Shown here in pieces: positions 2,601 to 36,252 of a DNA stretch of 36,845 nt. Where the stretch lies: assembly GCA_012026655.1 (NCBI GenBank), contig JAAILG010005517.1:1-36845 (forward strand), given 5' to 3'. The notes beneath the pieces are model-generated. The model searched no databases and was not told the DNA's origin. It saw only the letters and a program-made list of their open reading frames with translations. Made by a program: the position numbers and the translations under genes. Source of the DNA: Hydrolagus affinis. Its lineage: Eukaryota. Within the stretch, counting starts at the first letter, position 1. Every line of letters begins with the position of its first letter.

Positions 2601-4400
2601 TTATAAGAACATAAGAATTAGCAGCAGGAGTAGGTCAATCGGCCCCTCGAGACGGCCCGCCATTTGATAAGATCATGGCTAATATTCTGACCTAACTCTA
2701 GTGACGTGCCCGTGCCACAAATCCCCTAATCCTTCTATTCTCAAAAAAAATCTATCAGTCTCAGCCTTGAAAATGTTAAAGGACTGAGCATCTGCACCCT
2801 TTTGTAGTAGAGAAATCCATAAATTTACGAGTCGCTGCGTGAAGAATTGCTTCCTCAACTCTGTTCTAAAAGGCTGACCCTTAATTTTAAACCCTAGTTA
2901 TAGATTCTCTACCAGGCAAACAGTCGCTCAGTGTCTACTTTATCCAGCCCTTTAATAAACTGATATGATCCAATAAGATCTCCCCTAATTGTTCTGTATT
3001 CTAGAGAGTACAGCCTGAGCTTATTCAATCTATCGTCACAGGTTAGTCTCCTCATCCCTGGAAACAAGCTCGTGAATCTACGCTGCCACCCTCCAAGGCA
3101 AGTATGTCCTTTATTAAATAAGGAAACCAAAACTGCGCACAATACTCTAGGTGCGGTCTCTCCAAGGCCCAATACAGATGCAGCAAGTTCCCTACACTGG
3201 TACTCTATATCTTTTGCAATGAACGCTACCTTGCCGATTGCATTCTTAGTTGCTTGCTGCATCTGCAAACTATCTTTTTGAAACTGGTGTACAAGGACAA
3301 TTTGTACATTGACATTATCTATGCTATCCACGTCTAGAAAATAATTCCTTTTTTTATTTTTGATACCTAGTTGAATAATTTCACACTTCCTCACGTTAAA
3401 TTCTATCTGCCACCTACTCGCCCATTCCCCCAGCACATCTATATGCCGAGGCAATCTTTTCGCATCACCCTCACAGCTGACTCTCCTACCAAGTTTGGTG
3501 TCATCTGCGAATTTAAACACCCATACATTCAATATCCTCGTCTGGATCATTGATGCAAATTGTATATAGCTGACACCCAAGCACTGGTCCTTGTGGCACT
3601 CCACTAGTTACATCCTGCCGCTTCGAGAATGACCCATTTATCCCTACTCACTTTTTTCTACCCATTAGCTACTCTCCTATCCATGTTAATGTCTTCCCAT
3701 TACGCCCGTGTGACTTGACATTGTGCAAGCCTGTAGTGTGGCACTTTAACACATGCCTACTTAAAATCTAACTATACCACATCTACTTGGCCCCCCCTAA
3801 CCAACGTGCTTGATACATCCTCAAAAAACTCCAAGATTAGATAAACATGACATCCATTTTGTAAAGCCATGCTGACTCTGCCTAATCTTGTTAAAATCTT
3901 CCAGGTATTCCATAACGACGTCTTTATTTAAGGACTCAAGTATTTTCCCTACCACTGATGTCAGATTAACCGGTCTATACTTCCCCATGTTTTCTCTTCC
4001 ATCCATCTTAAATAGTTGAGTTACGTTTGCAATCCTCCAACCAATAGTAAAATTTCCTTTATGCAGAGAATTTTGAAACATGAGAGACAAGCCATCCACC
4101 ATTTCAGCAGTTATCTCCTTTAAAGCTTTAAGATGCAAGCCATCAAGTCCAGGGGATTTATCGGTTATAAGACCTGAAAATTTACCGAAAACCATGTCTT
4201 TACCAATATTAATCTCCCTAAGTTGCTCGTTAGCATTGTCTTCTTGGTTACCCTATATTCTTGGTAGGTTTGTATTGTTTCCTATATTGAAGACATTAGC
4301 AAACTACTTGTTTAACAATTCGACCATGTCCTTCCCCCCCTTATAATTCTCACTGTCTCTGCCTGTAACGGACCCACATTCATCCTTGATAGCCTTTACC
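2601..4400 (-). mobile_element. CR1 LINE, 5'-truncated, about 1.8 kb, frameshifted ORF2
   Basis: ORF 3821-4195 has KSPGLDGLH, ANVTQLFK, YRPVNLTSVVGK and SQHGF. ORF 2909-3604 has KFADDTKLG, WQIEFNVRKC and LYSLEYR.IRGDLI. The CR1 3' UTR follows toward 2610. Confidence 0.92.
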
Positions 4401-4585: not shown

Positions 4586-5046
4586 CAAATGCAAGGTTCA
4601 CTATTATTCATATACTTAATAGATTTGAGGTGACTGTTGGTCTTTAATGCACTAAAGCCACAACGATTGTCCAGTGTGACAAATATTGGGCAACCATTGT
4701 TTATCCGGTTCACACAGTCCCTCCCTTCAGGGTTCATAAAGTTAGAGAAAATTGCAGAATCACAGTAGGCGGGGTGTGTGCATGTGACAGTCGTTGTAGT
4801 ATATGACAACACCAGATGTGCTGCTGTCCTGTGGTCAGTGTAGACAGAGAGAGAGAGAGACTGAGTCTCAGTGTGTGTGTGTCACAATGAAGTAGGTGTT
4901 TGATGATCACAGACATGAGCGGTCTTAGCGGAAGCCGTTCCTGAGATCTCCACCGTGTGTCTTTTCTCCAATGAAGTGGAGTTCCCACCAGATTGAGCCA
5001 CTCGCTTCCAGTACCTGATCCTCCTCAGCTCCTCCACGTCTTCAAG

Positions 5047-5071
5047 ATGAAGCTGGTATTTTTCCTCTTCG
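5047..5071 (+). CDS. Signal peptide exon 1 (MKLVFFLF, phase 1)
   Basis: aagATG AAG CTG GTA TTT TTC CTC TTC G | GTGAGT. It has an A at -3 and a consensus donor. Confidence 0.75.
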
Positions 5072-5801
5072 GTGAGTACTGATTTACACAATATCACCGA
5101 GACGCTCCCATGGAATCTTGCTGGACACTCAATTCCCCCAAATTCTGCTCCGTGACCTGCTCCAACTTTCAGAACCAACGCATTACCCGCCCCTCCGTTA
5201 TGAGACTTCCGTTCAGCCTTTCTGTCACAAACATCTGGATTTCCATCCCACATTAACTCCGCCTCACTCACAACCTTGTTTCCTTCAAAGCCACGTTTGA
5301 TGTCACCAGCGCAAACGCCCATGCCCTCCATCCGCACTGATCACTACTGCCAGTTTGGGTATATATCCTTTACTATCCGCTTTGAAAATTCCCCCTGTTG
5401 TGAAATGCGCTTGTAATATGTATTTGGTGCTGTTGTCCAGGACAGAGAGGGTGGGAGAGAGGCGAGGATAAATGGATGAGAGTAGAAAGGAGAATCTGTA
5501 GACTAGACAGTATCGGTATTCAGAGGGATTTGGGTTTCCGTGTACACCTGTCACAAAACTTTAGTATGCAGGTACAACAAGCAACTAGGAAGGTTAATGG
5601 CATGTTGACGATCATTGCAAAATATGTAGAGCAAAAGATTAAGGAAGTCTTGCTGCAATTGTTTAGTTCCTTGGTGAGACCGCACCTAGAATTTTTTGTG
5701 CAGGTTTTGTCTCATTATTTATTGTTGTTCTTCTCGGAGTGACGAATCACAAACACAAGCAAGCCCCGTACAGAAACTGGCCATTCAGACAATCTATATA
5801 G

Positions 5802-5864
<63 letters not shown>

Positions 5865-8800
5865 TGTGGGTGTGGGTGTGGGTGTGTGCGTGGGTGCGTG
5901 GGTGCGTGGGTGCGTGCGCGCGTGCGTGCGTGCGTGCGTGCGTGCGCGTGCGCGTGCGCGTGCGCGTGTGCGTGTGCGCGTGCGCGTGTGCGTGCGCGTG
6001 CGTGTTCCCCCCCCCCCAATTGGAGCCTTTTCGGTGATGACCTTAAAGGCTGCCCTGTATATAACGTCCATGATGGAGTGAGACAACAGGCAGATGATAT
6101 AACTTATTGTATAAATTACTTATCAATAATTCGTGTTCTGATCTTTTTATTCTTATGCAGTGATGTTCCTGGAGAGATAGCCTGTGGATTCTGAAGGTTA
6201 GTTGCAACTTTATCCGAAGAACACAAAGTAGTTTCTCTCTGTACATTAACTCAAACATGGTAAATAATCTTCTCAGTCACTATCGCAGAATGCTTTTATT
6301 CCTTTCACCCATACTCATTTGTTCGCTTGTGTTCTGAAAGCAATCTGTAACATCTTCTTTGTTTGAGTTTTGTTCTCTTTCTTTTCAATCTTGTTCTGTA
6401 CTCCCAAACAAATGCTCCATTAATGTAGTTTGGCATTTTTATATTATTGCCTTTTTTTTTGGTCTTTCTATACCACTTCCACGTCTTGTTTTTCTCACAG
6501 TGCCTGCCACTGCTTCATATTGCTTCTTCTTTCATATTCTTTTCTCGGTAATTGCTTTAGTGTTCTTTGTTTGATCTCCCTTGATGTTCATGTATCTGTT
6601 TATCTGCGTTTGTCTATTATCCAGCACAACCTGTTTTACTTGCCAGTGTTGGCTCTCCTCATTTCTCCTCCCAAAATGCATCACCTCACATATCTCTACA
6701 TTAACATTCATCTGCCATATAGCTGCCCATTTTACCATTCGGTGTGTATCTTCTTGTAGATGACTACTATCCTCCTCAGTATTAACTATTTTCCCTAACT
6801 TTGTATCATCTGTAAACTTCAAAATGGTACTCCCTATACCCAAATCTAAATTATTAATACTTAATATGAATTACTATAATTGCCCTGATATCTTCCAAGT
6901 TCTCTGTCTCTGTACCCATGGTCTGAATTGTGTGTACAGCCAGGTTAACGCATCTCTCAATATACTGGACACAGTCATCTCTGTTGGTGACTGTCCTTTA
7001 TCATCTGTTCGTCTATTCATGTAGTATAGTAATGCCAAATGTTTTTATTTTGCTCAAAGTTCTTCCACATTTTCTGCAACGTTTCATTGTTCTTTCCACC
7101 CTTGCTTTGTTGGGGAGTATCATCGTGACCATGTTCTGTGTTCTATAACCAACTGTTTTGTGTTTTGGAAATATATTCAGCGCCCACTAATTATGTGGCT
7201 CATTATGATTTATTAAGTCCTGAAGTATTCCATGCCTGGCTAATATTTAGTTACTCTTTGCTATCACGTTGCCTGCAGTTGTGATATTTCATACTGCCTA
7301 TTCGCTATACTTTGTGGTATGGACCTCCATCAATATATATTGTAACAGAAAAAATGTTGTTGTTTTTTCTTGATGCCATGTGTGGTTTCTGAAACTGCAC
7401 CAAAGCTTGATGGCATTCTCTATTTTGATTACATGCAAATGTACCCAAATGTCCTATGAATTTTCATATTCCCAATGGGTTTGTTTTAATATTTTCCCTT
7501 ATATATAATCTTCCTAAACTAATCAAGTTTTAGCTTTCCTTTTTAGTCAATGTATAATTTNNNNNNNNNNNNNNNNNNNNNNNNNNNNNNNNNNNNNNNN
7601 NNNNNNNNNNNNNNNNNNNNNNNNNNNNNNNNNNNNNNNNNNNNNNNNNNNNNNNNNNNNAGAGGGTTTGAGTGGGGTATGTGGCGGAATGTGTTTTATT
7701 TACCTGAGTGGCCTGTGTCTGTAGTTGTTGTCCTCTGATGGGGTTTTGTTTTCTTTGGTGTTGATTTGGTTCCTGCAGTTGATATGCCTTCAGGTTGGCT
7801 GTATCCAATAGGAGTGGCTGCTGTTCGCTGCGTTGTCTATGGGGGACGGCAGAGATGTGTTAGCGGATATGTTTGTGACATGGGCTGTGACAGTGCCTGT
7901 GAAAATGTGCTCTGGTGACGGAGGATACTGTGCGTCTGCTTTAGAGGGAACTGCCCTACAGTCAATCGTAGTCTGTGACTGTGACGTGTGGCTGCTGCTG
8001 GAGATGTGTGTTGAGGAGCTTGTGACATTGGTGGATAGGTGTTCTTGGTAAATATCGGTGTCCTAGGATTGATAATCTTCCTGGGGGTATCTTTGACTCG
8101 TGTGCTGAGCTTATTGATCAGTTGCCCGGAGGGCGAGAGGGGCGCAATGTGCGTTGCATCTGTTTTCTGGGGTGGATTGGCTGTAAATGGTGGCAGTGGT
8201 TATGGCTGGGGGCGTGTCACTGGGGTGTTGATCTATACATGAGCAGTCGGCCTAATCCCTGTGGTAGGGATTCGGTTTCTGGGATTTGGGATGGTCGGTG
8301 TGCGTACTTATATATGTTTAACCCGTGCTGATTCTGTGCTCCAGTGGGAATGTGCTAGTGTTGGGTGGGAAGACACTGTACCTGGAAGACCTGGATGCCA
8401 CTGGGTGTAGGTTTTGCTAGCAGGGACACTATGTCTTGGCAGTAAGGCTGCACATTGGAGAGTAGCTTCTGTGAAATGGTGGACCGGCGGGGACAGCTGG
8501 GGTCTATGAATTATGGATTTTGCATCTATGGCTCTTTCGTAGGGTAGTCCCTGTGCCTGGATTGAATGTCTGTTACCTGGCGGGCGTGGGTTTGTTGCTC
8601 TGTGGGGTGTGTGTCTCTTGTGGGTGTCTGTTCCTGGGGAGCTCTGTAGGAGGGTGGTGTTTGAATGTCGCTGGTTGTGCCCAAAGGGTGGGTCTACACA
8701 GAGCCTAGGGACATCCTCTGGACATGAAAGGCGCTATATCAATGTGTTGTTTTATTGATTGATTGAGAAATTCCCAAGCTCAGTGATGAATGGAATTGCA

Positions 8801-11800
8801 AAGAACTCACCTGATATTACCCCATGTATTTCAACCTGGGGATGTCCCAAAATATGAAGGTGTCCAGCTTTTGTAAAGTACCTGGGTCTGTGAACGAAGT
8901 AAGAGGATGGTCGACCTTAAGCATGGTGAAACGTTTCGATCTTGGGACGAACGTAGAATGAGTGGAAAGTGGGAGCGAATCAGGGAATCATTTGTTTGCA
9001 TTGAGAAAAGGCAGAATGGATGTAAACTTGATCCCAATATTAAATGGATGGGGGGATGTGGGTTGGTGACGCTGCAGGGAGGGCGAGGTAGGCGAAGTTG
9101 ATCGTAAGTGAGATGTTGAGGTGGTGTGATGACTCATCGTTTGGTAAAATGGGGAAGTGGTACAGTGGATAAAATTACGGGTGAGTAACAGTGTCTTGAT
9201 CATAATCCACTGGAGGCTCACAGCTCATTTTCCCAACTTTATCTGGTTAGAACAGCAAGGAAAACACTCTACGGATTTCAAATCAAGCCTCGGGAAGTTC
9301 AGTCTCTCTGTGGACAGGATAAGTACAGGACTTTTATTTTATATCATATCCAACAAACATATCTGTCATTATTCGGTCCATCAGAACTGCACTGGAGCGT
9401 CAGCCTGGTCGTTGAGAACAAACCATCTGATCTGTGGCTTGAATACAGAAACATAATCCGAGACTCAGACACAGATCCAGATTGAAACACATCTCTGAGA
9501 GAACATTATTAACAGCTGTTGAAAACTCAACTGAGTGACAGTACGCTCTGCTTCCTCATCGTACATCTCAAAGAGAAACAGTCTCAGATGCTGCGTTTGG
9601 CGTCATTGTCAATACTGATGTTGACTGTCGCAAGAACGAACAGGTCGAGTGTTTGTGAAATTATCTTTCCTTTGTTTTGATTCCAGATCCATTCCAGAAA
9701 ACTACCATTTCCCTGAAGCCAGATTTCCGTGTGTTTGTGAAAGGGGAAAGCGCTGAGATCTCGTGTGCTGGAAATTATCCTGGCAGCACATTCTCTTTAT
9801 ACAGAGACGGCGTGTTTATCAAATCACAACCAGCTCCAGAGAATAACAACACGACTACATTCACCACATTGTCGATCAGAGCAGGAAATTACTGGTGCAG
9901 ATATATCAAACAGATAGAAAGCCAAGTGTATACATCACCAGACAGCGAGCCAGTGGGAAACACTGTCATAGGTAAGTGCACTGTACAACCTCACCCAATA
10001 TCATTTTTGTCTTTATACATAATCTCGATAAGTAGAATACCTCCTTTTGATATCACGCTATTGTTTAATGCACCTCAATGTGCCAAATACAACACTTTAT
10101 TAATTGTATATTTTGTGGGCTAAACTTCAATCGAATACAAGCAGGGTTCCTACTTAATTTGAGGTAAACACGACCACGCTGAATGAGAACTGAAACCTAA
10201 GGTTTCTTCCGACCGTCGAATTTAACCCGTGCCCTCTCATTTGGGAGCGCTCGCAATGTTAGTAGCTGTTTAATTTGCCTCGATCAGGAAAGACAATTTC
10301 TTCAAATCGGTGCCTCGCATAAGGAAAATAACAATAGTAATCATAAAGATGTCAGAAACACGTCGAAAACCATTTCCAAAATGTAGAGATTATCATTCCG
10401 TGCAAACACAAGAGTGAATTTAGCGACAAAAACTTCCTACACACAGTGGTGATATCAATTCCAATTAAATTCTAATTGTCAATACACAATGCGTTTCAAC
10501 TGGGAGGTGGAACAAGCCGTGTAACTGACAGGCTTGGCAATCCACCTGCAATGGAACAAAGTGGCGGGAAAGAAGACATAAAGCATGGTCAAAATGCGAG
10601 GTCATCAAATTGGATCTGGAAAGAGGGAAAGCATTGAGCGTTTCAGGGATGCAGATACATAGAGAAGAGGCAGAATGGCTGAAATCCTGATCCCGATGTT
10701 ACTGGCGTTGGAGGTCAAGTTGATGATGGTGGGAGGAGTGGGTGGTGAAGCAGATTTTGTTGTGTGGGCTGGGAATGTGAATTTGATTGTGTGGAGGGAG
10801 GAGAGAAGGTGAGCGGAATCTGATAATTGCGGTGAGGTATAGCGAGCGGAGGCTGAATTTTTTTTTGGAAGGTTGGGTGTGAGCAGGTTATAAAGCTGCT
10901 GCTTGAGGATGCCACATATGTAGCTTCTGGAGATACTGTTGAAAGAATAGAAGGTGAGAACTACCATCTTGATCATGAAACAGTGTATTCTGATAGCACA
11001 AGTTTCCAACTGTCTGGTGATTGGATATTCAGGGCAGCTATAAAAAGACGATAGCGTGAGATTTGGAGTCAGACTTATAACCAATCCGAAAGAGAAAGTT
11101 ATTAAGAACTGCTGATCAACTGCGTTAATAACAGTTTACAGTTGTGCCATGATCTAAAATTCAACTAAACAATCTCATGAAGTTTTTCACAGATCATAGC
11201 ACATAATTGTGAGAATACCTCTCGTGGGTTTTATTTTGATATCCACTTGAAAAACCCTCTATTTCCGTGAACCAATTCTCTGGTGTGTTTGTAAAAGGAG
11301 AAAGCGCTGAGATCAATCAATCCGTCNNNNNNNNNNNNNNNNNNNNNNNNNNNNNNNNNNNNNNNNNNNNNNNNNNNNNNNNNNNNNNNNNNNNNNNNNN
11401 NNNNNNNNNNNNNNNNNNNNNNNNNNNNNNNNNNNNNNNNNNNNNNNNNNNNNNNNNNNNNNNNNNNNNNNNNNNNNNNNNNNNNNNNNNNNNNNNNNNN
11501 CCAACCAATCAAACAATCAAACAATCAACCAACCAATCAAGCAAGCAAGCAATTAAAACTTACATTTATATAGCGCCTTTCACGTCGAGAGGACGTCCCA
11601 AGGCGCTGATCCATTGTTCTGGGTATCATCCTGACAGCAAATTCTCTTTATGGTATTTTTCGGCAGAAAAAATCAAAAACTGATATACTGGGTGCTTGCA
11701 CCGTACGATTTACGATAAATGAGATCACACCAGGATTTTACATCTGTATATATTCCCAAAACTTATCCGGACGATATTTCGCATCACCACGGAGTGAAGC

Positions 11801-14800
11801 AGTGCAAATCTCTGTACAAAGTAAGAGCGTGAGTTTGGATACTCCCACCAATCCTTAAAATGTCACATAACAACAATCACTTTTGTGACCAGTTACAGAC
11901 GGACAATTTTACTATTACTATTTACATTTGATAGAACCGGAGACGTCTTAAATGGCTTTACAGAACATATTATAGAGTAAATTGATTGCATATGCTGTGT
12001 GTGAAAGACCAATCGAATTAAAACCCAGTTTCTACTCATTTCGAGGTTACAGAAGTTGGTGAAGTCAGCAAATTTGCCAAATGTTTCTTCCCACCCAGAA
12101 ATCAAATGCATGCACTCACACCTGCTTTTGGGCGCGGATAACAAAATTCCTATCAACTTTGGCTTCGATCAAGAAACACAAAATTTCTAAAACAATGCCT
12201 CACAGAATAGTAATTAAAATAAACCAAATAAACCTTGACGGCAGGTGTACAAGACATCTCAAGGATTGAAAGTGCAGTCACTGTTATTTTATGGCAACCA
12301 CAACGTCCGATTTACACAACCCAATTTCCCACAAACATTGCTGACATAATCTGCAATACAACAGTAATTGCCATTACACAGTGCCTTTCAAATTGGGAAA
12401 TGCTAGGACGTGTTAATGTCCAGGCTAGCCACCCTTGTCGTGGGGTCCGAGTAGCGGATGAAGGGAAGCAGGGGGAGATTTTATCGAGACGAATAAGGCC
12501 TGATCTAGGGATGGGGGTGTTTGTGAGTTGTGATAATGACTCAAAGCAATCGATCTCAGAGAGAAACTTTGTAGAGATTACTGGGGATGATAACAGTACA
12601 TGGATCTGCTCATCTTAAATCAGAATCTCACAGCTGTCACTGGGGTTATTGTCGATCCTGGTGTTCAATGTCGTGCGCAGATTAGAGGGAGCGTTTGTCA
12701 TGTTTGTTTAAATGTTGCTTTATTTCCAGATCCTCCACGGAAAGCCACTATTAAACTGCAGCCAGATTTTCGGGTGTTTGTGAGAGGCGAATCTCCTGAA
12801 ATCTCGTGCTATGGGAACTATCGTGGCAGCAAATTCTCGTTATACAGAGACGGCGTGACGATCAAATCAAAAACTGCTCTAGGATATTATTACAGTGCAA
12901 TATTTGAACCATTCGTGATCATGACAGGAAGTTATTGGTGTATTTATACCAAAGCAATGGACGGGCGAGACCTCAAGTCACCAGAAAGCGAGCGAGTGAA
13001 AATCGCTGTGTGGGGTAAGAGCGAGAGGGTGGACTCTCACCAATCTGCAACAACTCATAAAATAACCTGTTTCTCTTCCGACCAGTTACAGGCAGCCAAT
13101 AAAATTAATACTTCCTTTGATACCATAATGTTAGACGACCACAATTGTTGTAGATAAAGTATTGTAAATAGTTTTGATTCCTCATTTTGTCATCAAACGC
13201 CATTCGCCTAATGACTGTTTTCCGACTTGTTGTTGGTTATACAAACGGCGGTGTGGGGTGTTAGAGTCAGGGAAGCTGGATAAGGTTTCTCCTCAGCCGT
13301 AAATTTGAATATATTACTCTTAGTTGAAAGGCGAGGGCTCACAAAGAGGAGAAATTGGATTTTTTCTTCGATTACGAAAATATAATTACTTCACAACAAT
13401 GTCAAAATAACAGCTACTTTAAAACATAACAGTGATAATGGTAGCATTAATGTCCAAATCATGTCTGAAACCCTTTCGAAGTGCAGCCTGTTATTTCACG
13501 CAAAGCACAACATCCAATTTTCTCACAGCAATATCCAACAAACTGTAAGATGTAAAGTGAATTTCAGTACTCGGTGACAATACATAGGACCTTTTAGTTG
13601 GGGATGTGCCAAGTAGTTCTAGTTTGAGTCTCCATTTGGGGTGAGGTCCGGGGAACGATGATGCTAATTCCTACAGTGCATTTGGTCGTTTTTGAGAGGG
13701 GCGTTCAACGAGGCGCGAGGGAGTGAGTCAGTGGGTGTCTGTTGTGCAGTTCCAGAGAAAACTGGCGTAATGTCAATTGAATTTTATTCTTCTTACTTGC
13801 CAGTCAAGAGCTTGCGTTAAAGAGAACTGGAATGTTTGTTTAGATTAAGCAAGATAATCGCTTTAATTGTCTCGTACAATAATCCCACTAATTGTAGTGT
13901 CAGAATCACGGTTGAAACCCCTTTGAAGTGCAGCCTATTATTTCATGGCAAGCACATCATCCTATTGACTCACAGCAGCAACAAGAACTTCGATTCAAAA
14001 AGCATTAAAAGAGTGCCCAGCAAACAATGGTAAGGTGAATTGCAATTCAATAATAGCTGATATTAGGCAGGAAATTTGAGCGCCGGAATGTGTTGAATAG
14101 TCCAAGTTTGACTCTCTAGCTGTGGTGGGATCCGAAGGAAAGGAATACCCAAAAGTGCAGAGCATGGGGACATTTTTGAGAGGGATCTTCAACGGGGGAA
14201 GAGTGGGCCGATCAGGGTGCGTCTGGGATGCTGATCGAAAGAAAACTGGGAAACTGGCTGAAAGGCCGACTTTCATGTTGGTGACCGTTGGAAATTGAGA
14301 TTCTGTGTGGAGAAATATGAAACGATTCACATTGGAACAAAAAAAGACATGGAAAAGATAAAGGAATTGGAAATCGTGATTAGCAACATATTGGAGCACC
14401 AACAGCAATTCTCTTTGACATTAAGTAAAGCAAGCCAAATGATCTTATGTATCAAAAGAATAATATCTATCAATGAATCGATCATTCAATCAAAACTTAC
14501 ATTTATGTAGCGCCTTTCATGTTGAGAGGACTTCCCAAGTCGTTGTGCAGTCAGGTACGCACATGATAAGGGGAGCACGATGACGGAGATTTGTATATTT
14601 TTGAGCGAAACGCAGCAGCCAAACTGCGCAGAGTAGTGTCCCACAAACAGTCATGGAGGTGTGATTAGGGCAGAAAAGTGAAAAATAGAGTAAGGCTATT
14701 ATTTGTTGGTGAATCTAACATCGAATTGATGCACAGCAATGTACATAAAATGTATATATTTCTCTTGGGGATTTTCATCACATGTAACATCCCAGGCTTG

Positions 14801-17019
14801 ACACACGATCTGGTGATTGAAACCGAGCTGGAGAAGGTGTGTACTGAGCTGGGGATGGGGGATGATCTTGGGTGAACGCCTAAAATGTGGTTGGATGCTG
14901 AGCTGGTCGTGGGGATGGAGTTGTTGCTGGGGCTTGAGCTGGGAGGTGAACTGAAGTGGGATTGAGAGCTGAACTAGATATAGGAACTGAGATTTGGGTG
15001 TGTTTCAGGTGATTGCAGGATCCGATCGAAGGGTGCGGTCTGCACTTGGGATGGGGCTTAGACGGTGTTGTGTCTTAGCTGATTCCAGGCAATGAGTCCC
15101 AGCATCTCACTCCACGCTGTGTGCAGCAGCTGCTCCTGAATTTCCGGTTTAATTCGCTGCCGGACATCTTATAGAGAAACATCTGCACATCATCAGAGAG
15201 GTTCAGGCTCTAGGTCCTGCCCTAGTGTTACTCTTGTCTCGCTATCCAACCTCAACAGCCGTGTCCAAGCCGTCGCGCCACCTCTCTCTGTGTAAAGAAC
15301 AACTCGCTGCGGTCAGCCACTCAATCCCCCCACTCCCTCCACTCCAGTCTGTGATATAAGCGAATGGTCACTTTTACTCTGATCGGAACCGCGTCTGTGG
15401 CACAGAGTGAGTGTTTGTGATATTAACGTTATTGTGTTTCCATTTCAGATCCTCTCCAGAAACCCAACATTTCCCTAAAAAGTGATTCCCCTGGGATCAT
15501 CGGAGGAGATAACGCTGAGATCTCGTGTTCTGGGAATTATCCTGGCAGCACATTCTCTTTCTGCAGAGACGGCGTTTTTGTCACATCACAACAAGCTCCA
15601 GAGAATAACAAATCTGCTGCAATCATCTCGACGAACATCACTGCAGGAAATTACTGGTGCAAATATACTGCACAGATAGGCGGCCGGGAGTTCACATCAC
15701 CAGAGAGTGATCGAGTGGGAAATTATGTGCGGGGTGGGAGATGAGTAAACTCTCACACAATAGCATGTTTGACTTTTATACCTGCTCCTCTTGCCATTGT
15801 TTACGCCAGTCGATCATATTTGCTTGTTGTATTCTGGTGTCAGCAGGAGTGTTTGTCCCGGACAGAAACATATCCATTCGGTAAAACAGTTTAGATACCC
15901 TACTCCCAAATGATAGTGACACAGCAATAATTGTGTCTTTATCTCCCCTGCCACTCTTTTCTACACTGTCCCTCCCACCCACTACCTGGTCTCTTCTCCC
16001 AACTCCTAGACTTGTCTCTACTGTCATCTCCGCCAAATGCCTATCTCGCTCTCCCCAATACACCAATGCTGCCCTCCCTTCTCGCCTTTCTCCCAGCCTC
16101 CCCGTTTTCAACAAATCTACCTTACCCGCTTCAATTATTTCATATGCCCCGCCTCCCCCTATTAACTATTCTCTTACCATACCCCACTATCTTCTCCCTC
16201 TCACGCACTCCTCCCTCTCCCACCATTTAGCCCTCTCCTCTCGATCCACCCTGCCTCTTCACGCTCTCTCCCCATCTTTACCTCTTCTTCAGTCCGCCTC
16301 CCCGATTTTCTCCCTCTCACTATACTCAAACTTCTCTAGAAGCTACTCTCTCTCTACTCTCTCGCATTCTCCGCCATATTCATCCGGCCGCTCCCAACTC
16401 TACCCTCTCCGCCTCACAGTTCTCTGTACACACTACCTCCTCTCGCCTCCCCGTCTCTCCCTTATACGCACCACTAACTGGCTGCATCCTCTTTCGCTCC
16501 ACCTCCACCACTCACTCCAACTTACCGCCCACTATCTCTCAGTTTTTCAAGCCCATGTTCCACTATCTTCTCTTTGGGAAGTATTTCCGACGTCAAAGGC
16601 GCACTGAAATAAAATGATGTTGTCGATGTTTCCGTGCTATGCCTTCTAAACAACGTCAAATCCATTTCACTGCACAATGGAGTATTCAGATGTGTCGCTA
16701 TGAAACTTGATTGAATATATTTAAACACGCTGATGGGTTGGGACGCCGTTCGGCGAGGAGTGCGGTATACAAATCGAAGTTGTTAGTTTTCCATTTTGTT
16801 GGACACCCAGCTGACAAGTGTAGTCATGAATAATTGACTAATCATGTCTATCTCACAGGTTCCTGGAATAGGATGGAAATTATCAACAGTGTCCGGATCA
16901 GCCTGGCCATCGTAGTGTTGCTGGCTAGTATTCTGGTGCTGGTGGTCGAATGCCGACCAATGAAACCAGACAAGAGTCAAGAAACGGTTACTGAAGAATC
17001 GCGCCAACCTCTCCACTGA
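5047..17019 (+). CDS. LRC-type (LILR/GP6/FCAR/NCR1/CHIR-like) activating Ig-superfamily receptor gene; multi-exon; possibly a null allele or recent pseudogene in this assembly
   Basis: Exons: 5047-5071, 6161-6196, 9687-9971, [dead 11241-11820], 12730-13014, 15449-15733, 16859-17019. All junctions are phase 1 with AG/GT ends. Skipping the dead exon gives 1077 nt (359 codons), with one in-frame TAG at codon 15. The Ig domains have the C-x-G-x-Y-x-G-S-x-F-x-L-Y-R-D-G ... G-x-Y-W-C ... S-P-x-S-E-x-V pattern and the TM has an N-terminal Arg. Confidence 0.85.
5510..5720 (+). mobile_element. CR1 LINE fragment in intron 1
   Basis: ORF 5476-5742: QRDLGFRVH...QVQQATRKVNGML...EVLLQLFSSLVRPHLEFFVQ. Confidence 0.85.
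5802..6005. repeat. Compound microsatellite (TG)n / (GGTGTG)n / (CGTG)n / (CGCGTG)n
   Basis: Directly visible, mostly alternating purine-pyrimidine. It produces several low-complexity ORFs in the track. Confidence 0.95.
6161..6196 (+). CDS. Signal peptide exon 2: 36-nt mini-exon with in-frame TAG (6178-6180)
   Basis: ttcttatgcag | TG ATG TTC CTG GAG AGA TAG CCT GTG GAT TCT GAA G | GTTAGT. Phase 1 at both ends; all three frames contain a stop. Confidence 0.7.
6650..6845 (-). mobile_element. CR1 LINE RT fragment
   Basis: ORF 6532-6843: ILKFTDDTKLGKIVN...LQED...WQMNVNVEICEVMHFGRRN. Confidence 0.85.
7561..7660. other. Assembly gap (100 N; true size probably unknown)
   Basis: Run of exactly 100 N, lying between the mini-exon and the first Ig exon. 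Confidence 1.
8700..8765 (+). mobile_element. L2/SINE 3' tail ending in (ATTG)n
   Basis: gagcctagggacatcctctggacatgaaaggcgctatatcaatg...attgattgattg. Confidence 0.7.
9687..9971 (+). CDS. Ig C2 domain exon D1 (285 nt, open)
   Basis: ttccag | (D)PFQKTTISLKPDFRVFVKGESAEISCAGNYPGSTFSLYRDGVFIKSQPAPENNNTTTFTTLSIRAGNYWCRYIKQIESQVYTSPDSEPVGNTVI | GTAAGT. Confidence 0.92.
10600..11050 (-). mobile_element. Decayed L2 LINE ORF2 fragment (between endonuclease and RT)
   Basis: ORF 10605-11084 resembles the L2 linker region (..SARYTS..HLLSSL..PAHTTK..). The similarity is weak. Confidence 0.45.
11241..11820 (+). pseudogene. Ig C2 domain pseudo-exon D2 (disrupted)
   Basis: PLEKPSISVNQFSGVFVKGESAEI (11241-11314), then the insertion, then HCSGYHPDSKFSLWYFSAEKIK, a frameshift, and TDILGACTVRFTINEITPGFYICIYSQNLSGRYFASPRSEAVQISVQ | GTAAGA. 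The acceptor reads ttttgat with no AG. Confidence 0.85.
11315..11607 (-). mobile_element. 5'-truncated L2/SINE tail with (CAAT/CAAC/CAAG)n microsatellite, inserted in D2; includes N-gap 11327-11500
   Basis: aaaacttacatttatatagcgcctttcacgtcgagaggacgtcccaaggcgct at about 11555-11607. GATC flanks both sides (11311-11314 and 11608-11611). Confidence 0.8.
12730..13014 (+). CDS. Ig C2 domain exon D3 (285 nt, open)
   Basis: tttccag | (D)PPRKATIKLQPDFRVFVRGESPEISCYGNYRGSKFSLYRDGVTIKSKTALGYYYSAIFEPFVIMTGSYWCIYTKAMDGRDLKSPESERVKIAVW | GTAAGA. Confidence 0.92.
14495..14665 (-). mobile_element. SINE fragment (Deu-like core + L2 tail)
   Basis: Reverse complement of ctgtttgtgggacactactctgcgcagtttggctgctgcgttt ... 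tgaaaggcgctacataaatgtaag. Confidence 0.7.
15449..15733 (+). CDS. Ig C2 domain exon D4 (285 nt, open; absent from the ORF track because it has no early start codon)
   Basis: catttcag | (D)PLQKPNISLKSDSPGIIGGDNAEISCSGNYPGSTFSFCRDGVFVTSQQAPENNKSAAIISTNITAGNYWCKYTAQIGGREFTSPESDRVGNYVR | GTGGGA (weak donor). Confidence 0.9.
15930..16625 (+). mobile_element. Decayed L2 3' end with long pyrimidine-rich tract and L2-like tail
   Basis: CT-rich tract at about 16130-16570, ending in gacgtcaaaggcgcactgaaataaaatgatgttg, which resembles the L2 tail. Confidence 0.5.
16859..17019 (+). CDS. Stalk/transmembrane/short cytoplasmic exon with TM arginine
   Basis: tctcacag | (G)SWNRMEIINSVRISLAIVVLLASILVLVVECRPMKPDKSQETVTEESRQPLH*. 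The Arg codon is at 16894-16896 and the tail has no Tyr. A candidate AATAAA lies at 17443-17448. Confidence 0.88.
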
Positions 17020-17479
17020 TCTCCTCTCAAACATCAGAATCCAGCCCGTCTCCATTTTATCCTCTATGTCAGTCCATGGCATCTTTCTCTTACTCTTGCT
17101 ATAACTTCCCGCCTTTGCCTTTGCTCGCACGCTTTTATCCACTCATTTCCAAATTCTCTGTCTGTCTCCTGTGACGTGTGATGTGGATTTGACCGCTTGA
17201 AGGCTGAGCGGCTACATGCACCAGAAAATTGCAAGTACAGTAATAACTGTCACGTTTTATTTTGCAGCGTTCGCTTCAGTAAAATGTTTCAAATCACTTT
17301 ATTAATGTTGACGGGAAAGTAGATGTTCTTTTAGGAAGCGATGGTAACATATATTTGTAACTATTTTTTAGAAATGAACATTTCTAAATGTTTAATGTTG
17401 CTTTGGTGTGTATTTTCCATGTAACAAATATGAACTATCACAAATAAATTAGTTCATAAATCTGTAAACCTTTGTGATG

Positions 17480-20319: not shown

Positions 20320-21130
20320 AACAACTTAAACTTCTAAAGCGCCTTACACGTAGGGAGGACGTCCCAAGGCGCTGCACAGGAGGCGTGTGACCCGAGCTGG
20401 GAGAGGAGTGTTCGGGAAGGGGTGAAGCACGTAAGGGAGGTCAAAAAATTCGGGTGGAACAAAAAGGCACCGTCGAAGAGGAAAGTCTTCAAACCAGCCT
20501 TGAAAGAGAAAAGGGAGGAAACAAAACGGAGCGATTGGGGGATGGAATTCCACAGGATGGGAGCGGAGAAACTGAAGGCCCGGCCTCCGATGGTGGGGCG
20601 GTTCGGGCGGGGGGCTTGGAGAAGGCCAATTCCTGCTGAATGATGGGTCCGGTTGGGCTTATATGGGGAGAGTCAATTGGTTAAGTAGGGCGGGGCAAGG
20701 CCGTGTAAGGCCTTGAAGGTGAGGACGAGGATCTTGAACTCGATCCTCTGGAGGATGGGGAGCCAGTGGAGACGGGCGAGGGTGGGAGGTATTTGGTCGC
20801 GGAGGCGTGTGCGGGATAATACATGGTCTGCAGAGTTTTGGATGATCTGCAGCCTGTGAATGGAGGAGCTGGGTAGGCCGACGAGGAGATAGTTTCCGTA
20901 GTCCAGCCGTGAGGTGATGTAAGTGAGCACGAGTGTTTCTGCAGCGTGGGGGGTGAGATAGTTGCGGAGCCTGGCAATGTTGTGTAGGTGGAAATAAGCG
21001 GTGCCGGTCAAGGCACGGATGTGGGGACGGAAGGAGAGTTTATGGTCGAACGTAATGCCGAGGTTCCTGACTGGCTTTGTGAGGTGGAGAGTACAGCCTT
21101 GGATGTTGAATTTGCCAATCTCTGGTCTGA
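20320..21130 (-). mobile_element. L2 LINE, 5'-truncated, about 0.8 kb, relatively young
   Basis: Open 153-aa ORF 20673-21134 (VRNLGITFD..LSFRPHI...SRLDYGN..LVGLP...RLHWLP..QRIEFKILVLTFKALHGLAPPYL). After a frameshift it continues GGRAFSFSAP.LWNSIP...LKTFLF, followed by the tail at about 20320-20375. Confidence 0.93.
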
Positions 21131-21510
21131 TCACGTGTGTATGTAATTAATAATTTCCCAATTGAATCCCAGGACATTACCTGTATTCATTTTAACAAAA
21201 TTGATGAATTGGTCACTTTCATCCACGAACCTTTGTGGGAATCTCCTGTGTTCAATTCTCTGACAGATTTCACCACAAATGTACGGTTAATTCACTTTAT
21301 AGTAAATTACGTGATCTTCCCACAAGATATGTGGAGTACGTGGAAACAGTTATATGAAATGCAATGATAATTATTATTGCTTTGCGACTCAGGTCAGTTT
21401 AATACTATCAAAATTTAGTGAGACTTAAAGCCGAGAACGGATTTACCTTTTTCTACATCTCCCCTGATATTTTGTGTAGTTATTGTGTGTTCAATTAACG
21501 ATAACAATTC

Positions 21511-23835: not shown

Positions 23836-24702
23836 ATGCTCCTGTGGGCGAAGTGTGCTGTGCTTACAGTATCTCTCAGCTTACTTTCTCGTATGTAACC
23901 TTCTTATACCTTTACCATTTTCCCATAATATCTGCTAAAGGCTTCAGTAGAGCAAAACTAATAACAATATTAATGATAATTGGGATTCTCTAACGTGTTT
24001 CTTCACAAATTTGAGACGTCTCAACGCACTCCACATTATAATGTAAAGCGAATTGACAATGTATTCTCTGGGTGCATCGTGAGAGTCAATTTCGCTCAAC
24101 AGTGCCCCCAAAATTTTTAACGGATTCAATGACGAAATTATTATTATTTTTATTGGTTTACATATATGAATGATTAGCTCCAGAATAACAATCCACGAAT
24201 TGACTAACATTTGGATTTCTATTTCCTAGTAGTCTCACAAAGCCATGCGGAGTAAAGAATTTTAGCTGAGGTATTGCACTGCTCAGGAATCGAATCTGGC
24301 TCTACTCTCTTATGTGGCTAGTTTTGTAACCATCGAGCAGCAGGATCCCTATGTAATTCAATCTTGATTCTCAAAAACCTTGTTGATTTCAATCACAGGA
24401 AGCAGCTTGCAGGAAATGGGGAAACAATCGATGACTGAAAGATCGATTCTAGAGGCACAAGATGTGAAATTGTCCTGCAGCTTCAAGAAAATCATTAATG
24501 CGTATGCTCTCTTCTGGTACAGACAAGCTTCCAGCCACGCTCCTGTGTATCTATTGCGGGGAACAGCGACTAACGTTCAAAGGAACCCCGACTTCCCAGC
24601 TCGATTTTCCTCCACTGTCAATAAATCGAGTGAAGATTTCGTACTGAGGATTGGCACAGTCCTGATCAGGGACATTCCTGTGTATTACTGTGCCATGGAG
24701 CC
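23836..24702 (+). CDS. TRAV: TCR alpha/delta V segment V2 (family B), open reading frame
   Basis: Leader 23836-23890 (MLLWAKCAVLTVSLSLLS | GTATGT). V exon 24399-24702 reads SSLQEMGKQ...VKLSCSF...LFWYRQ...PARFSS...DIPVYYCAME with no stops. Confidence 0.88.
24240..24350 (-). mobile_element. SINE head in the V2 leader intron
   Basis: Reverse complement reads gggatcctgctgctcgatggttac...gattcgattcctgagc...tctttactccgc. Confidence 0.55.
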
Positions 24703-24741
24703 CACACTGCTGCTGTGCTATGGGGGCTCTGTACAAAAACA
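24703..24741 (+). other. 23-RSS of V2
   Basis: CACACTG + 23 bp + ACAAAAACA. Confidence 0.92.
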
Positions 24742-24824
24742 TCAACTGGTTATTTAGCTGCTAAACGGCGAGGGGGCATCATTGCTTCAAGAAAAAATAA
24801 GCAGCGTTTATACATGTTTGAATA

Positions 24825-26531: not shown

Positions 26532-26990
26532 ATGATGCAGCATTTCACTGCAATATACGCTGTTATTAATTTCTTTGTATTATTTTTGTGTAAGTGCGTT
26601 ATGTGTTTGAAAAAAACAGCACTTTCACGTTCCACTGCTGATTATGTAGAAATTAGCTTTACCGATATCATTCGAATTTCATTCAAAGATTGTTCATTTC
26701 TATTCCCCAGGTGTCTTAGCTGAACGTGATGTGTCACAGAATCCTCAGGCGCTGACAGAGAATGCAAATGGAAATGTGTCTATGGAGTGCAGAACCACTG
26801 GATACGTCGAATACTTTCATTGGTACAAACAGTATGGAAATGGTTCCATCCAGTACTTGGTGATGGGAACCAGAGAGATGAAGGAAGGGCCGAGGATAAG
26901 TGCCTTGGCTGACACAAACGAGAAAAACAGCACACTATCAATCAAAGACGTGCGAGTGACAGACACCGCCATTTACTTCTGTGAAACAAG
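26532..26990 (+). CDS. TRAV: TCR alpha/delta V segment V3 (family A), open reading frame
   Basis: Leader 26532-26589 (MMQHFTAIYAVINFFVLFL | GTAAGT). V exon 26711-26990 reads VLAERDVSQNPQ...MECRTTGYVEYFHWYKQYGNGSIQYL...STLSIKDVRVTDTAIYFCET. Confidence 0.92.
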
Positions 26991-27029
26991 CACAGTGCTC
27001 CGTGTCTCAGAGGAGCCTGTACAAAAGCA
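26991..27029 (+). other. 23-RSS of V3
   Basis: CACAGTG + 23 bp + ACAAAAGCA. Confidence 0.93.
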
Positions 27030-28156
27030 GAATGAGGACCCAGTAGATATTTGTGTAAATAACTCATCTCGCAAACAAGTAGAGCTGGATTTCGATTCTT
27101 GGATATTGTGCGATTTTCCTTATTCCACATGCCTCTGCTAATAGTAGTAGTTTGTAGGTATCTGTTTCGCCGTTGATCGAGGGATCACTAACCTGAGGGT
27201 CATAATGCCTTTTAAAAAATACAAACGTTCACTTCAATTCACGACTGTTTGTAAGACGCTGATCTGCTGCAATTTGCCCAACATTTCAGTTAATTTCAGT
27301 TCACAGCAGAACTCTGAATAATGAATCAGGCAAAATTAAAATTACAAGGTTTATTATTACACTAATGCAGAGCATTATGTAGGAAACCGGCTGCTAGTCG
27401 ACTGGCCGATAGCCTTTCCTGGGTCAACACTCCAATAACAAAATGGATGACTTTCCATTACGTTTTGCTAGACAAGGCTGTGTGAATTTGGCTACCGTGT
27501 ATTTTATTCAGAAGATATATGAACGCTACCAATGGCAGTTCTTCTTGTGAAGAGATTAGAGATGTTTTGAAGATGCGACAAGATGCTACATCAAACACAA
27601 TAATATTTCTTGGCACTCCAATTTTGATTCTTACACTCGCAAGCATGAGACGTGTTCTTCACATGTTTACATTCTGGTTAGTAAAATACACAATGTCATT
27701 CAGCGAAACAAAACAAATTTTGGCGAATAATTATGCTAAAAGATAGTTGTGTTTTGTACACAAACGGCTGTAACCCAGAAGCCTGGAGAAGAAATGGGGC
27801 ACGAAGGAAAACTTCAGGTAACTAGGGCAGAGACATCAGAGAAATTGGTGATGTAACGTGTCTCCTGCCCATTGGCTCTGAACCCTCTCATTGACCTGTT
27901 TCAGCTCTTTACCATAGTGATGGAAGAGAACCAATGGGGGAGCGAGTTGGCAGAACTGAGTGAGTGATGCAAACTGGCAGTGACATAAGTGTTGTGAATA
28001 ACTTTCAGACCTGCTCATTCGCAGCCTGTGGCAAATTCTCCATGTCACATATTGTTCTGCCCTCCACACTGCAGCTAACTGCCTCCCAGCCAGCGGTTTG
28101 GAACTCCACCATCAACGCTACCTCAACACCACATGCCACTAAACACACATATCACA

Positions 28157-28992
28157 ATGTATATTTACCTGGCAGCAGGCATCGTAATCTTCGTTGGTAA
28201 GCCGCAAATTCATATCATATATTCATGCACATATTACCCAATGTGTATTTTTTCTTATTGCATGAATTATCCAATAAATTGCAGGGCTTGAAAAGCGGTA
28301 GCGTCCTGTAGCTCAGTGAGTAGGGAGGGAGAATCTCCAGGTAAGTTTACTTGCGCCACAAACAAGTCCATGTTTCAGTAAGCTTAAATAGGAACCCTAC
28401 TGTAGGTAAACTTACTGATCGCGTCTCTGAAGCATGTAATTTCAAAAAGTTAGTCGTATATAAATCACTCAATTAACTAGTTTTTTTTTTTGACTGATAT
28501 GCGCAATTGGTTCTGATGTTTTGCCCAGAAAATTTGCTTAATTAATATTTCGTGAAGCCATTTGAGGTGTCGCCGATACGGGCTACATCGCTGTATGGAA
28601 TGTAAGGATTACTAATATCAATATTGTTTTTATTATTATCATTCCTATTTATATTATTATTACTGATTTATTTAATTTCTAGGATTTTGTGATGGAGACG
28701 CTGTGACACAGCTCCAATCCAATGTGACAGCAGATCAAGGGGAAGATGCAATAATGCAGTGCAATTATACAGCAGCAATGGACACCAATATATATCTGTT
28801 CTGGTACCGTCACTGTCCCAACTCAGCTCCAGAATATATCCTAAGCACATCCGTCAGGAACAATCCACAATACACAGACTTTGCCAAAGGACATTTCTCA
28901 GCAACAGTGGATAAAGTGGGGAGAACCGTCCCATTAAATATATCCCAAGTGAGAGTCACAGACACGGCGGTGTATTAATGTGCACTGAGCCC
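28157..28992 (+). pseudogene. TRAV: TCR alpha/delta V segment V4 (family C), pseudogene by a single nonsense change
   Basis: Leader 28157-28196 (MYIYLAAGIVIFV | GTAAGC). V exon from 28683 reads FCDGDAVTQ...MQCNY...LFWYRH...TVPLNISQVRVTDTAVY*CALS. TAA at 28976-28978 replaces a Tyr codon. Confidence 0.92.
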
Positions 28993-30668: not shown

Positions 30669-31538
30669 ATGACAGGTCAATGTCATTTACTGATAGCAAT
30701 CCTCACCATAGCCAGTAAGTAAGTGTGGACATGCCCAGTGCATGTGATTTGGTATTACAAGATGTGAAAAGCGCTATATCACATGCCCGTATCATTATTA
30801 TATAATATTCGGTAGTGTAGCAATTAGAGCACTCCAATGAAAAAGAAAATACCTCAGCGTAACTCACGGCAGGGCTAATTGTTGGACAATTTGCTCTACA
30901 CCAACACACGACTTTGTGAGTCTACCAGTAATTAGGAACTGTATTCAACTTCCAGCTCGAGTCTTCTCTCCAAAAATTATTGAAATACCAATATTTTGAG
31001 CGCTCACTCTCGAACTGTTTATTGAACACTGTTGTGCACAAATAGCTGTGAGGTTCGTCTGAAAAGGCGATTGGAGGCAATTCATTTGATATTATATTCA
31101 TTGGGTATTTTGTATATATTTTTGTAACGTCTCATTATTGTGAAAATTCGAGCACAAACACTCGATATTAGTTGGTATTATTCGAATTGCACATTAATCT
31201 TTGCCTTACCTACTGAAAAACAAGTTGTTTTTTTATTGCAGAAGTTATGGGGAAAGATGTAATATACCAATATCCTCCTGAGATAAGGGAGTTTGAAGGA
31301 AAAGACGTGAGAATAAACTGCAATTATTCCGCAATCTATGCTGCCTTCTGGTACAGGCAATATCCAGATGGAGGTCTTCAGTACTTGCTGAAGATTTATA
31401 ACTCGGGAAAGGTAGACAAAGCTCCTGATATTCCGTCCGCTTCACTGCCAAGCTGGACAAGGAGAATAATGTATTTAACTTGCAAATACTCAGGGCTGAT
31501 GTGGGTGACGGCGACATGTATTACTGTGCACTGGAGCC
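30669..31538 (+). pseudogene. TRAV: TCR alpha/delta V segment V5 (family D), frameshifted pseudogene
   Basis: Leader 30669-30714 (MTGQCHLLIAILTIA | GTAAGT). V exon 31242-31538 reads VMGKDVIYQYP...INCNYS...FWYRQYPDGGLQYLL...PDIP, then a 1-nt frameshift near 31433-31440, then RFTAKLDKENNVFNLQILRADVGDGDMYYCALE. Confidence 0.9.
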
Positions 31539-31577
31539 CACATTGTGACAGGAGGACAGATACACTGTACAAAAACT
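31539..31577 (+). other. 23-RSS of V5
   Basis: CACATTG + 23 bp + ACAAAAACT. Confidence 0.9.
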
Positions 31578-31679
31578 CAGCAGACAATCGTGACTTCCTC
31601 TCACGCATTCAACTTGGTGCTGCCAACACACTGAGGTGGCTACACTAATATAACAGGGAGGGCGGTGTACAGAGGCTGT

Positions 31680-36213: not shown

Positions 36214-36252
36214 CACAGAGGCACAGATCAGTGTTCCTGCCGTACAAATACC
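36214..36252 (+). other. 23-RSS of V7
   Basis: CACAGAG + 23 bp + ACAAATACC. Confidence 0.9.

Follow-up and report, generated by a model that had tools for sequence, protein, structure and literature searches.

Structure of the locus and state of the leader

The window, by which we mean the whole 36,845-nt stretch of DNA analysed here, holds an immunoglobulin (Ig)-like receptor gene, the sole gene of its kind within the 36.8 kb, with five antigen-receptor V segments downstream of it and retroelement fragments in the flanks. All parts of the gene lie on the forward (+) strand. It begins with a promoter and 5′UTR region (4790–5046) that has been kept between the window and a Callorhinchus milii paralogue on the locus L001: positions 4790–5102 align with L001 19179–19499 at 67% identity, and at 73% across 182 nt 5′ of the ATG (blastn). 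The leader is split between exon 1 (E1, 5047–5071), which contributes 25 nt from the ATG (M-K-L-V-F-F-L-F plus one base; donor gtgagt), and a 36-nt mini-exon 2 (E2, 6161–6196), which runs from phase 1 to phase 1 and is flanked by ag and gttagt. Further downstream lie three readable Ig exons, D1 (9687–9971), D3 (12730–13014) and the membrane-proximal D4 (15449–15733), each of 285 nt, in phase 1 and bounded by AG/GT; the C-strand motif is FSLYRDG in D1 and D3 and FSFCRDG in D4, and all three end in S-P-x-S-E/D-x-V. The terminal exon (16859–17019) encodes a short stalk, a transmembrane (TM) segment, INSVRISLAIVVLLASILVLVVE, in which N-S-V-R is followed by 17 mostly hydrophobic residues and then E, and a 22-residue tail without Tyr, ending in TGA. 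The 3′UTR region (17020–17300) is kept in C. milii paralogues, and 16845–17300 is 69% identical to L001 36938–37396.

The original prediction had described the split leader, the three phase-1 Ig exons with their unusual C strands and the TM exon with its short Tyr-free tail, and each of these parts is present, the two leader exons with their splice signals. It had also called the gene complete; here it missed an in-frame stop codon in the leader mini-exon and a fourth, decayed Ig exon, D2. The stop, as it reads in the assembly, is a TAG (6178–6180, +) in place of a Lys codon conserved in the family (AAG in C. milii), from which it differs by one A-to-T change. Read in the frame of E1, the mini-exon gives V-M-F-L-E-R-stop-P-V-D-S-E, a peptide that resembles the family leaders V-I-F-L-E-R/G-K-T..., and its length and boundaries are those of L001 21584–21619. 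E1, in turn, aligns with its counterpart in the C. milii P0160 gene (exon 1, 28 nt from the ATG, with the same donor, GTGAGTA). Other open mini-exons of 36 nt or similar length between E1 and D1 were rejected, because 6161–6196 is homologous to exon 2 of the family.

D2 (about 11243–11822, +) has lost its acceptor (AG to AT) and the Trp ahead of the second Cys, and it contains a (CAAT)n and SINE insertion and a 2-nt deletion. An assembly gap (11327–11500) lies inside the insertion; the D2 halves on either side of it are in the correct order and orientation, and the frame is broken irrespective of the gap. The SINE piece at 11560–11608 is highly repeated. Loss of D2 would not by itself kill the gene, because the dead exon would be skipped in splicing. 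A precedent is pseudoexon 3 of human KIR2DL1-3, a decayed Ig exon within the gene that is skipped in this way, although KIR2DL is otherwise intact, whereas in the window gene the leader is broken as well.

As assembled, the window copy is predicted to be unable to make a secreted or membrane protein; the likeliest reading is a null allele or a pseudogene of recent origin. We consider it unlikely that the gene is intact and encodes a functional three-domain activating receptor, with the TAG due to a miscalled base or a misassembly, or else representing a rare allele. Such a reading could draw on the gapped assembly, and it would fit the rest of the gene, in that D1, D3, D4 and the TM exon each have an open frame and canonical splice sites, and the three domains keep both Cys and six family-invariant positions. 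The sequence around the TAG is, however, clean and unambiguous, and the mini-exon retains both of its splice sites; the leader contains no downstream ATG, and skipping of the mini-exon would give a leader of only 8 residues. In addition, D1 and D4 depart from the family at several nearly invariant positions. Reads were compared across 11501–17300, downstream of the TAG. No sequencing runs from the same species were found; the matches were genomic contigs of relatives, 90–96% alike, and, on D4, a handful of single-cell RNA reads (~95% identity), and no splice joints were seen in reads across 11501–17300. The changes listed for the TM exon in these related species, which also speak for an intact gene, are all conservative, with none listed at N, R or E.

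Relatives in Callorhinchus milii

That this is a cartilaginous-fish gene, as had been predicted, is borne out by its closest relatives, of which 28 out of 28 at E ≤ 1e-20 come from C. milii. In the family search, 19 proteins scored above 120 bits per domain, every species-named one being from C. milii, and the next tier, with sharks, rays and coelacanth, reached at most 45 bits. The Ig exons of the window match one another at E-values of 1e-20 to 1e-33, and the close C. milii relatives are 55–71% identical per domain; as judged from the alignments, both kinds of match are far above chance. D1 is up to 71% identical to one C. milii domain, D3 shares 60 of 92 residues with a domain of P0172, and the D4 exon aligns together with its intron flanks to the C. 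milii locus L003. The family is already annotated in the elephant shark, under machine names such as IGSF1-like, A1BG-like, OSCAR and DMBT1-like, but unstudied, and the window gene is a further member.

Homology of the leader, Ig and TM exons matches the window gene to a holocephalan SRCR/Ig paired-receptor family. In most of the C. milii relatives the TM is uncharged and the tail carries ITIM-like tyrosine motifs; a few relatives share the window's TM exon. Many members have one or more SRCR exons between the leader and the Ig exons; P0006 and P0172 are without SRCR. P0160 (XP_007909116, ‘DMBT1-like’), encoded on L001, has a homologous promoter, exon 1 and 36-nt exon 2, but combines two SRCR exons with one Ig exon, whereas the window has no readable SRCR exon (no match by tblastn with 19 family proteins). 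SRCR exons may nevertheless hide in a second assembly gap (7561–7660, unstranded), which starts 1.37 kb past the mini-exon, a distance like the 1.43 kb between the mini-exon and the first SRCR exon of the L001 gene. No reading frame spans this gap, because it falls within intron 2. The assembly has several gaps and is below finished quality.

Some of the C. milii relatives are intact genes that share both the 36-nt mini-exon and the TM exon (with Arg or His). P0160, P0180 (‘IGSF1-like’) and P0172/P0174 (‘IGSF1-like’/‘OSCAR isoform X2’) have this TM exon, with N-x-x-R/H, ...V-E-C-R-P... and a short tail, and P0172/P0174 are intact proteins of 362 aa composed of leader, three Ig domains and TM. 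In contrast to these open genes, the window copy has the TAG in exon 2 and the dead D2. More distant are multi-Ig proteins of the same superfamily in the sharks Heterodontus (XP_067878191, ‘DM43-like’), Mustelus (XP_078059674, ‘FCRL5’) and Carcharodon (XP_041036023, ‘PECAM-like’). Like the window gene, all three have a TM with one outer-face Arg and a distal Glu, followed by a short tail, but against the window profile they reach only ≤45 bits per domain. In the gene model from Heterodontus there is no 36-nt mini-exon, and stalk, TM and tail lie on separate exons, unlike in the window gene; in FCAR, TM and tail are on a single last exon, as in the window gene.

It is fairly probable, in our view, that the window contains one locus of a multigene family of paired Ig-like receptors, expanded in holocephalans, that leans towards the leukocyte receptor complex (LRC), this copy being a probable pseudogene or null allele. 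Since the copy is probably non-functional, its value lies mainly in pointing to the family.

LRC and FcR-like affinities of the Ig domains

Domain matches place the gene within the KIR/LILR/FcR-like superfamily, and its ectodomain consists of C2 Ig domains resembling those of LILR, NKp46 and OSCAR. Within it, D1 looks LRC-type by family profile and by fold ranking. Searched against the PDB, the D1 family profile found PIR-B (1.8e-17), LILRB2 (3e-11), NKp46 (4e-9) and OSCAR (8e-7), and on the FcR side Fc-epsilon-RI alpha (3e-6) and Fc-gamma-RII (4e-3). The AF2 models have a pLDDT of 92.8 for D1 and 86 for D4. In a Foldseek search of Swiss-Prot, the best 28 matches to D1 were for the most part proteins encoded in the LRC, or IGSF1 and A1BG, which are related to these (HIDE1 and Allergin-1 also appeared), the FcR family first appearing at rank 29. 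The fold matches of D4, by comparison, mix FCRL5, FCRL3, FCRL2, FCRL1 and FCRL6 with NCR1, HIDE1, VSTM1 and IGSF1, and for this modelled domain the FCRL matches are about as good as the LRC ones. The LRC membership originally proposed finds support in D1, for which LRC proteins come first by family profile and fold ranking, but the matches of D4 are mixed between LRC and FCRL, and small profiles favour Fc-epsilon-RI alpha. Pfam assigned generic Ig families, with a further, sub-threshold match to Ig_C19orf38 (HIDE1).

The mammalian FcR-gamma-coupled LRC receptors (LILRA2, PIR-A, NKp46/NCR1, OSCAR, GPVI and Fc-alpha-R) likewise have a 36-nt second leader exon, C2 Ig domains without a C-strand Trp on phase-1 exons and a TM in which N-x-x-R is followed distally by an acidic residue, with a short tail behind it, and they provide the best fold match to D1. 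They differ in that LRC proteins are only 20–28% identical to the window domains, D4 is not clearly LRC-type and the window shows no LRC-like synteny, 36.8 kb being too short to speak against synteny on a larger scale. A second leader exon of 36 nt is the rule in LRC genes (KIR, LILR and FCAR). In FCRL genes, the rule is a second leader exon of 21 nt (30/21) (PMC2413239), which the 25- and 36-nt leader exons of the window do not follow.

The family may, instead, not be LRC proper and belong to the FCRL lineage, or it may have split off before LRC and FcR separated, the LRC-like traits being ancestral; we regard this as possible but rather doubtful. Fc-epsilon-RI alpha is the best PDB match of D1 alone and of a three-sequence (three-domain) profile, FCRL5 reaches 2.7e-9 with the family profile, and the window is without an LRC framework gene. 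Together with the FCRL proteins among the D4 fold matches and the name FCRL5 given by NCBI to some shark relatives, these results point away from the LRC. Set against them are the 36-nt second leader exon and the first place of LRC proteins for D1 in three partly interdependent searches. Moreover, in the fold comparison FcR domains align over 10–12 residues fewer, and the machine names of the relatives are mostly LRC-related (IGSF1, A1BG, DM43, LILRA6 and OSCAR). The TM exon cannot separate LRC from FcR-like genes, because Xenopus FcR-like (XFL) genes also have an NxxR TM (PMC2413239); this favours a non-LRC origin, and the ‘three independent hallmarks’ put forward for an LRC-family receptor do not independently prove LRC membership. 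XFL TM1 receptors and the Xenopus LRC genes, all four of which are NxxR-type (PMC6557307), are likewise non-mammalian paired receptors with such TMs; a fraction of the XFL genes follow the 30/21-bp leader rule, as compared with 25/36 in the window gene.

The transmembrane exon and the origin of adaptor pairing

By its residue pattern, the TM exon of the window gene is of the activating-receptor type. The terminal exon shares 27 of 52 residues (52%) with the C-terminal end of C. milii P0180 and is homologous to those of P0160 and P0172. If intact, a copy would encode a type I glycoprotein at the cell surface. The Arg in its TM would associate with the Asp in the TM of a dimeric ITAM adaptor, either FcR-gamma or one of its relatives (CD3-zeta, for example), and the binding of a ligand would set off signalling through Syk-family kinases. 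Coupling to FcR-gamma itself we infer by analogy: NxxR TMs bind FcR-gamma in both Xenopus and mammals, and XFL TM1 receptors associate with it (PMC2413239).

It is conceivable, and we give this some weight without favouring it, that the TM exon relies on an adaptor other than FcR-gamma, such as CD3-zeta or a DAP12-like protein, or on no adaptor at all, Arg/His and Glu serving for oligomerisation or membrane positioning. The key position, Arg in the window, is His in two C. milii homologues (P0172/P0174 and P0180); FcR-gamma has been reported missing from cartilaginous fish (2014 survey, PMC4016189); and the window TM peptide scores only ~42–45 against reptile NxxR TMs, not above unrelated TMs. 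The position of N-x-x-R, the acidic residue 18 positions on (+18) and the short tail free of Tyr are, however, the pattern of FcR-gamma-coupled LILRA, NKp46, GPVI, OSCAR and Xenopus TM1, and in sharks, too, there are relatives whose R...E TM is followed by a short tail. Database searches with the TM regions of C. milii and turtle alone returned only the queries, the peptides being too short for an E-value against 5.8 billion sequences.

How LRC and FcR-like paired receptors arose, and how they came to be paired with ITAM adaptors, is an unsettled question. For cartilaginous fish, the 2014 genome survey (PMC4016189) reported no genes of the LRC, FcRL or FcR-gamma kind, and a 2019 analysis (PMC6557307) still described the situation in fish as uncertain. 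In the literature on sharks, including the elephant shark, our search for LRC, LILR, NxxR, FCER1G or DAP12 yielded nothing besides the 2014 survey. It is possible, if somewhat improbable, that the chimaera family represents a genuine early offshoot of the LRC lineage. If so, LRC-type domains, a 36-nt leader exon and an adaptor-coupling NxxR TM would already have been assembled in the jawed-vertebrate ancestor, both in ITIM-bearing and in activating members of a paired set, some of them with SRCR domains fused on; in the window, such a gene lies beside a T-cell-receptor V array. The published account, which places the origin of LRC/FcR-like receptors and of FcR-gamma with the bony fish, would then no longer stand. 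The question can be tested with intact genes, because the C. milii relatives are publicly annotated, though misleadingly machine-named. Together with these intact relatives, the locus reveals a sizeable chimaera family with LRC-like domains, a 36-nt leader exon and both ITIM-tailed and NxxR/H TM members.

Exon structure and lesions of the window gene

What the original prediction observed was largely right: a scripted check of frames and splice sites, beside direct reading of the sequence, bore out the exons that it had placed. On the + strand, the leader is split between a 25-nt exon with an initial ATG and the donor gtgagt (E1, 5047-5071) and a 36-nt mini-exon bounded by ag and gttagt (E2, 6161-6196); three 285-nt, phase 1 Ig exons with AG/GT borders follow (D1, 9687-9971; D3, 12730-13014; D4, 15449-15733), and the last exon, which encodes the transmembrane segment (TM, 16859-17019), ends in TGA. 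Every quoted Ig motif was found (FSLYRDG, FSFCRDG and S-P-x-S-E/D-x-V), as were the N-S-V-R and distal E claimed for the TM segment and its Tyr-free tail. D1, D3 and D4 match each other pairwise (E 1e-20 to 1e-33), and an intra-window comparison returned no further copies of this type of Ig exon elsewhere within the window.

The exception is the description of the gene as complete, which is wrong, as there is a stop codon in the leader mini-exon and a fourth Ig exon (D2) is dead. In the frame fixed by E1, E2 reads V-M-F-L-E-R-stop-P-V-D-S-E, with the TAG at 6178-6180. Despite this stop, 6161-6196 is judged to be the correct mini-exon by its match to leaders of the Callorhinchus milii family (V-I-F-L-E-R/G-K-T...) and to exon 2 of the annotated C. 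milii P0160 gene (genomic locus L001), which also has 36 nt and identical boundaries. In the P0160 gene, the codon at the position of the TAG is AAG (Lys), so the stop corresponds to one A-to-T change at a conserved codon. The leader contains no ATG downstream of the stop and would, if the mini-exon were skipped, be reduced to eight residues only; given the TAG, a functional product from this copy is unlikely. D2 (about 11243-11822) has lost its acceptor (AG to AT), is split by a (CAAT)n and SINE insertion, is shifted in frame by a 2-nt deletion and lacks the Trp preceding the second Cys. The repeat insertion contains an assembly gap (11327-11500), but the D2 halves stand in the right order on either side, so the reading of D2 is unaffected. 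The SINE-like element, one copy of which is the insertion splitting D2, is seen at 11560-11608 and 14411-14798, is very abundant in all four sequencing runs (summed contig depth up to millions), and copies of it in C. milii loci match it at 90-92%.

The other gap (7561-7660) falls inside intron 2 and is therefore crossed by no reading frame. Single C. milii genes match the window gene at both ends, with the promoter, E1 and E2 on one side and the TM exon and 3'UTR on the other, which supports one gene spanning this gap. The gap lies 1.37 kb behind E2, and the first SRCR exon of L001 lies 1.43 kb behind its exon 2; no SRCR exon is present in the readable window sequence, the gap itself being unreadable, and the introns do not align with those of L001. 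Directly right of the gap is a G-rich, strongly GC-skewed block (7661-8700, skew +0.34), unlike the T-rich sequence to its left. Intron 1 contains a long (GT)n run grading into (GCGT)n-like repeats (5800-6000).

The Callorhinchus milii family and its shark relatives

Pfam assigned the window Ig domains to generic Ig families only. A D1, D3 and D4 profile searched against 1.84 billion representative proteins gave 535 matches, including 19 proteins above 120 bits per domain, every species-named one of which is from C. milii. Below these, scores drop to 45 bits or less per domain, first with proteins of sharks, rays and coelacanth and then with LILR/IGSF1-like proteins of reptiles. When a C. milii member served as query instead, 28 relatives were retrieved at E <= 1e-20, all 28 from C. 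milii, with the machine names A1BG-like, IGSF1-like, OSCAR, M130-like and DMBT1-like. These matches trace the window to a holocephalan or a very close relative. On sequence grounds, the window gene is a member of this publicly annotated receptor family, no description of which was found in the literature, and the object of interest is the family and not the broken copy.

In most C. milii members the TM is uncharged and the tail has ITIM-like motifs, and many members carry N-terminal SRCR domains. The window-type TM exon is common to a minority, with the motif N-V-A-R in P0160 and P0047, N-I-V-H in P0180 (27/52 identical to the window TM peptide over its whole length) and N-V-L-H in P0172 and P0174, the last two being intact 362-aa proteins composed of a leader, three Ig domains and a TM. 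In P0176, P0002, P0010 and P0042, family Ig domains are fused to SRCR domains and followed by ITIM-like tails. One NCBI model in the C. milii set, named 'TRIM17-like', has PRY/SPRY domains in addition, which points either to a gene model joined in error or to an unusual combination of domains.

More distant shark relatives have R...E TMs and short tails. An R...E TM is also present in the Heterodontus francisci P0084 gene (L002 3001-24648), but this gene model is without the 36-nt mini-exon, its one-exon leader continuing into the first Ig exon, its Ig exons have 312 nt rather than 285 nt, and stalk, TM and tail are on three separate exons. The chimaera architecture is thus not common to this shark gene model.

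LRC-type or FcR-like affinity

Three hallmarks had been taken to place the gene in the LRC family. FCRL genes have, by rule, a second leader exon of 21 nt (PMC2413239), so the 36-nt E2 counts against FCRL; the NxxR TM is not discriminating, because Xenopus FcR-like TM1 receptors also carry it and bind FcR-gamma (PMC2413239). When D1 alone or a 3-sequence profile was searched against PDB, Fc-epsilon-RI alpha was marginally the best match. Against PDB, a family profile of 35 domains gave PIR-B (1.8e-17), LILRB2 (3e-11) and FCRL5 (2.7e-9) at the top, then LILRB1 and NKp46 (about 4e-9), OSCAR (8e-7), Fc-epsilon-RI alpha (3e-6), KIR3DL1 (1e-5) and Fc-gamma-RII (4e-3).

AF2 models of D1 (pLDDT 92.8) and D4 (pLDDT 86) were compared using Foldseek. 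Against Swiss-Prot, the best 28 matches of D1 are mostly LRC-encoded proteins or relatives (including VSTM1, NCR1, IGSF1, LAIR1/2, LILRs, A1BG, GP6, OSCAR and TARM1, and also HIDE1 and Allergin-1), and the first FcR-family match is at rank 29; against PDB, NKp46, LILRA5, LILRB4, CHIR-AB1 and LAIR1 come first and Fc-epsilon-RI alpha is at rank 35. For D4 against Swiss-Prot, HIDE1, VSTM1, NCR1, TARM1 and IGSF1 are intermixed with FCRL5, 3, 2, 1 and 6. For D1 and the leader, an LRC type is plausible, but it is not established. We read the gene as a member of the KIR-like/FcR-like superfamily for which the evidence leans towards, without proving, an LRC type.

Proposed adaptor pairing, reads from relatives and genomic surroundings

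Sequence shows how the domains are arranged, what pattern the TM has and that the family is one of paired receptors. Adaptor pairing is proposed on the model of LILRA2, NKp46, GPVI, OSCAR, Fc-alpha-R and Xenopus TM1: the partner of the TM Arg would be the Asp of a dimeric ITAM adaptor. FcR-gamma coupling of a window-type receptor, part of the original prediction, is conjecture. Two C. milii genes with His in place of Arg call for caution on this pairing. A 2014 survey reported no FcR-gamma in cartilaginous fish (PMC4016189), and no newer literature on this point was found.

Run searches found no sequencing run of the same species. In relatives, reads over 11501-17300 gave genomic contigs 90-96% alike to the window gene over introns and exons, and no splice joints. 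The differences listed for the TM exon spare N, R and E: they consist of an R-to-M change in the stalk, L-to-V, M-to-I and a single silent substitution. Over 16739-16932, at the start of the TM exon, the contig depth summed in run X17 of one relative reaches about 930, compared with about 20-100 for the neighbouring bins, and one contig (depth about 415) has G-to-T at 16871. That species may carry several copies of the TM exon or of the flank upstream of it.

Reverse-transcriptase-like ORF fragments of LINE type, with an F-A-D-D motif, lie on both sides of the gene (2909-4195 and 20673-21134, both on the - strand), and their copies in L001 are 71-77% alike. Further downstream, five + strand V-domain ORFs with W-Y-R/K-Q and Y-Y/F-C motifs (24380-24757, 26731-27141, 28703-28978, 31247-31648 and 35876-36262) make up an antigen-receptor V array about 7 kb from the receptor gene. 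One of them contains a CACAGTG heptamer at 26991, and the best single-domain PDB matches of the ORF at 35876-36262 are TCR alpha and V-delta-1.
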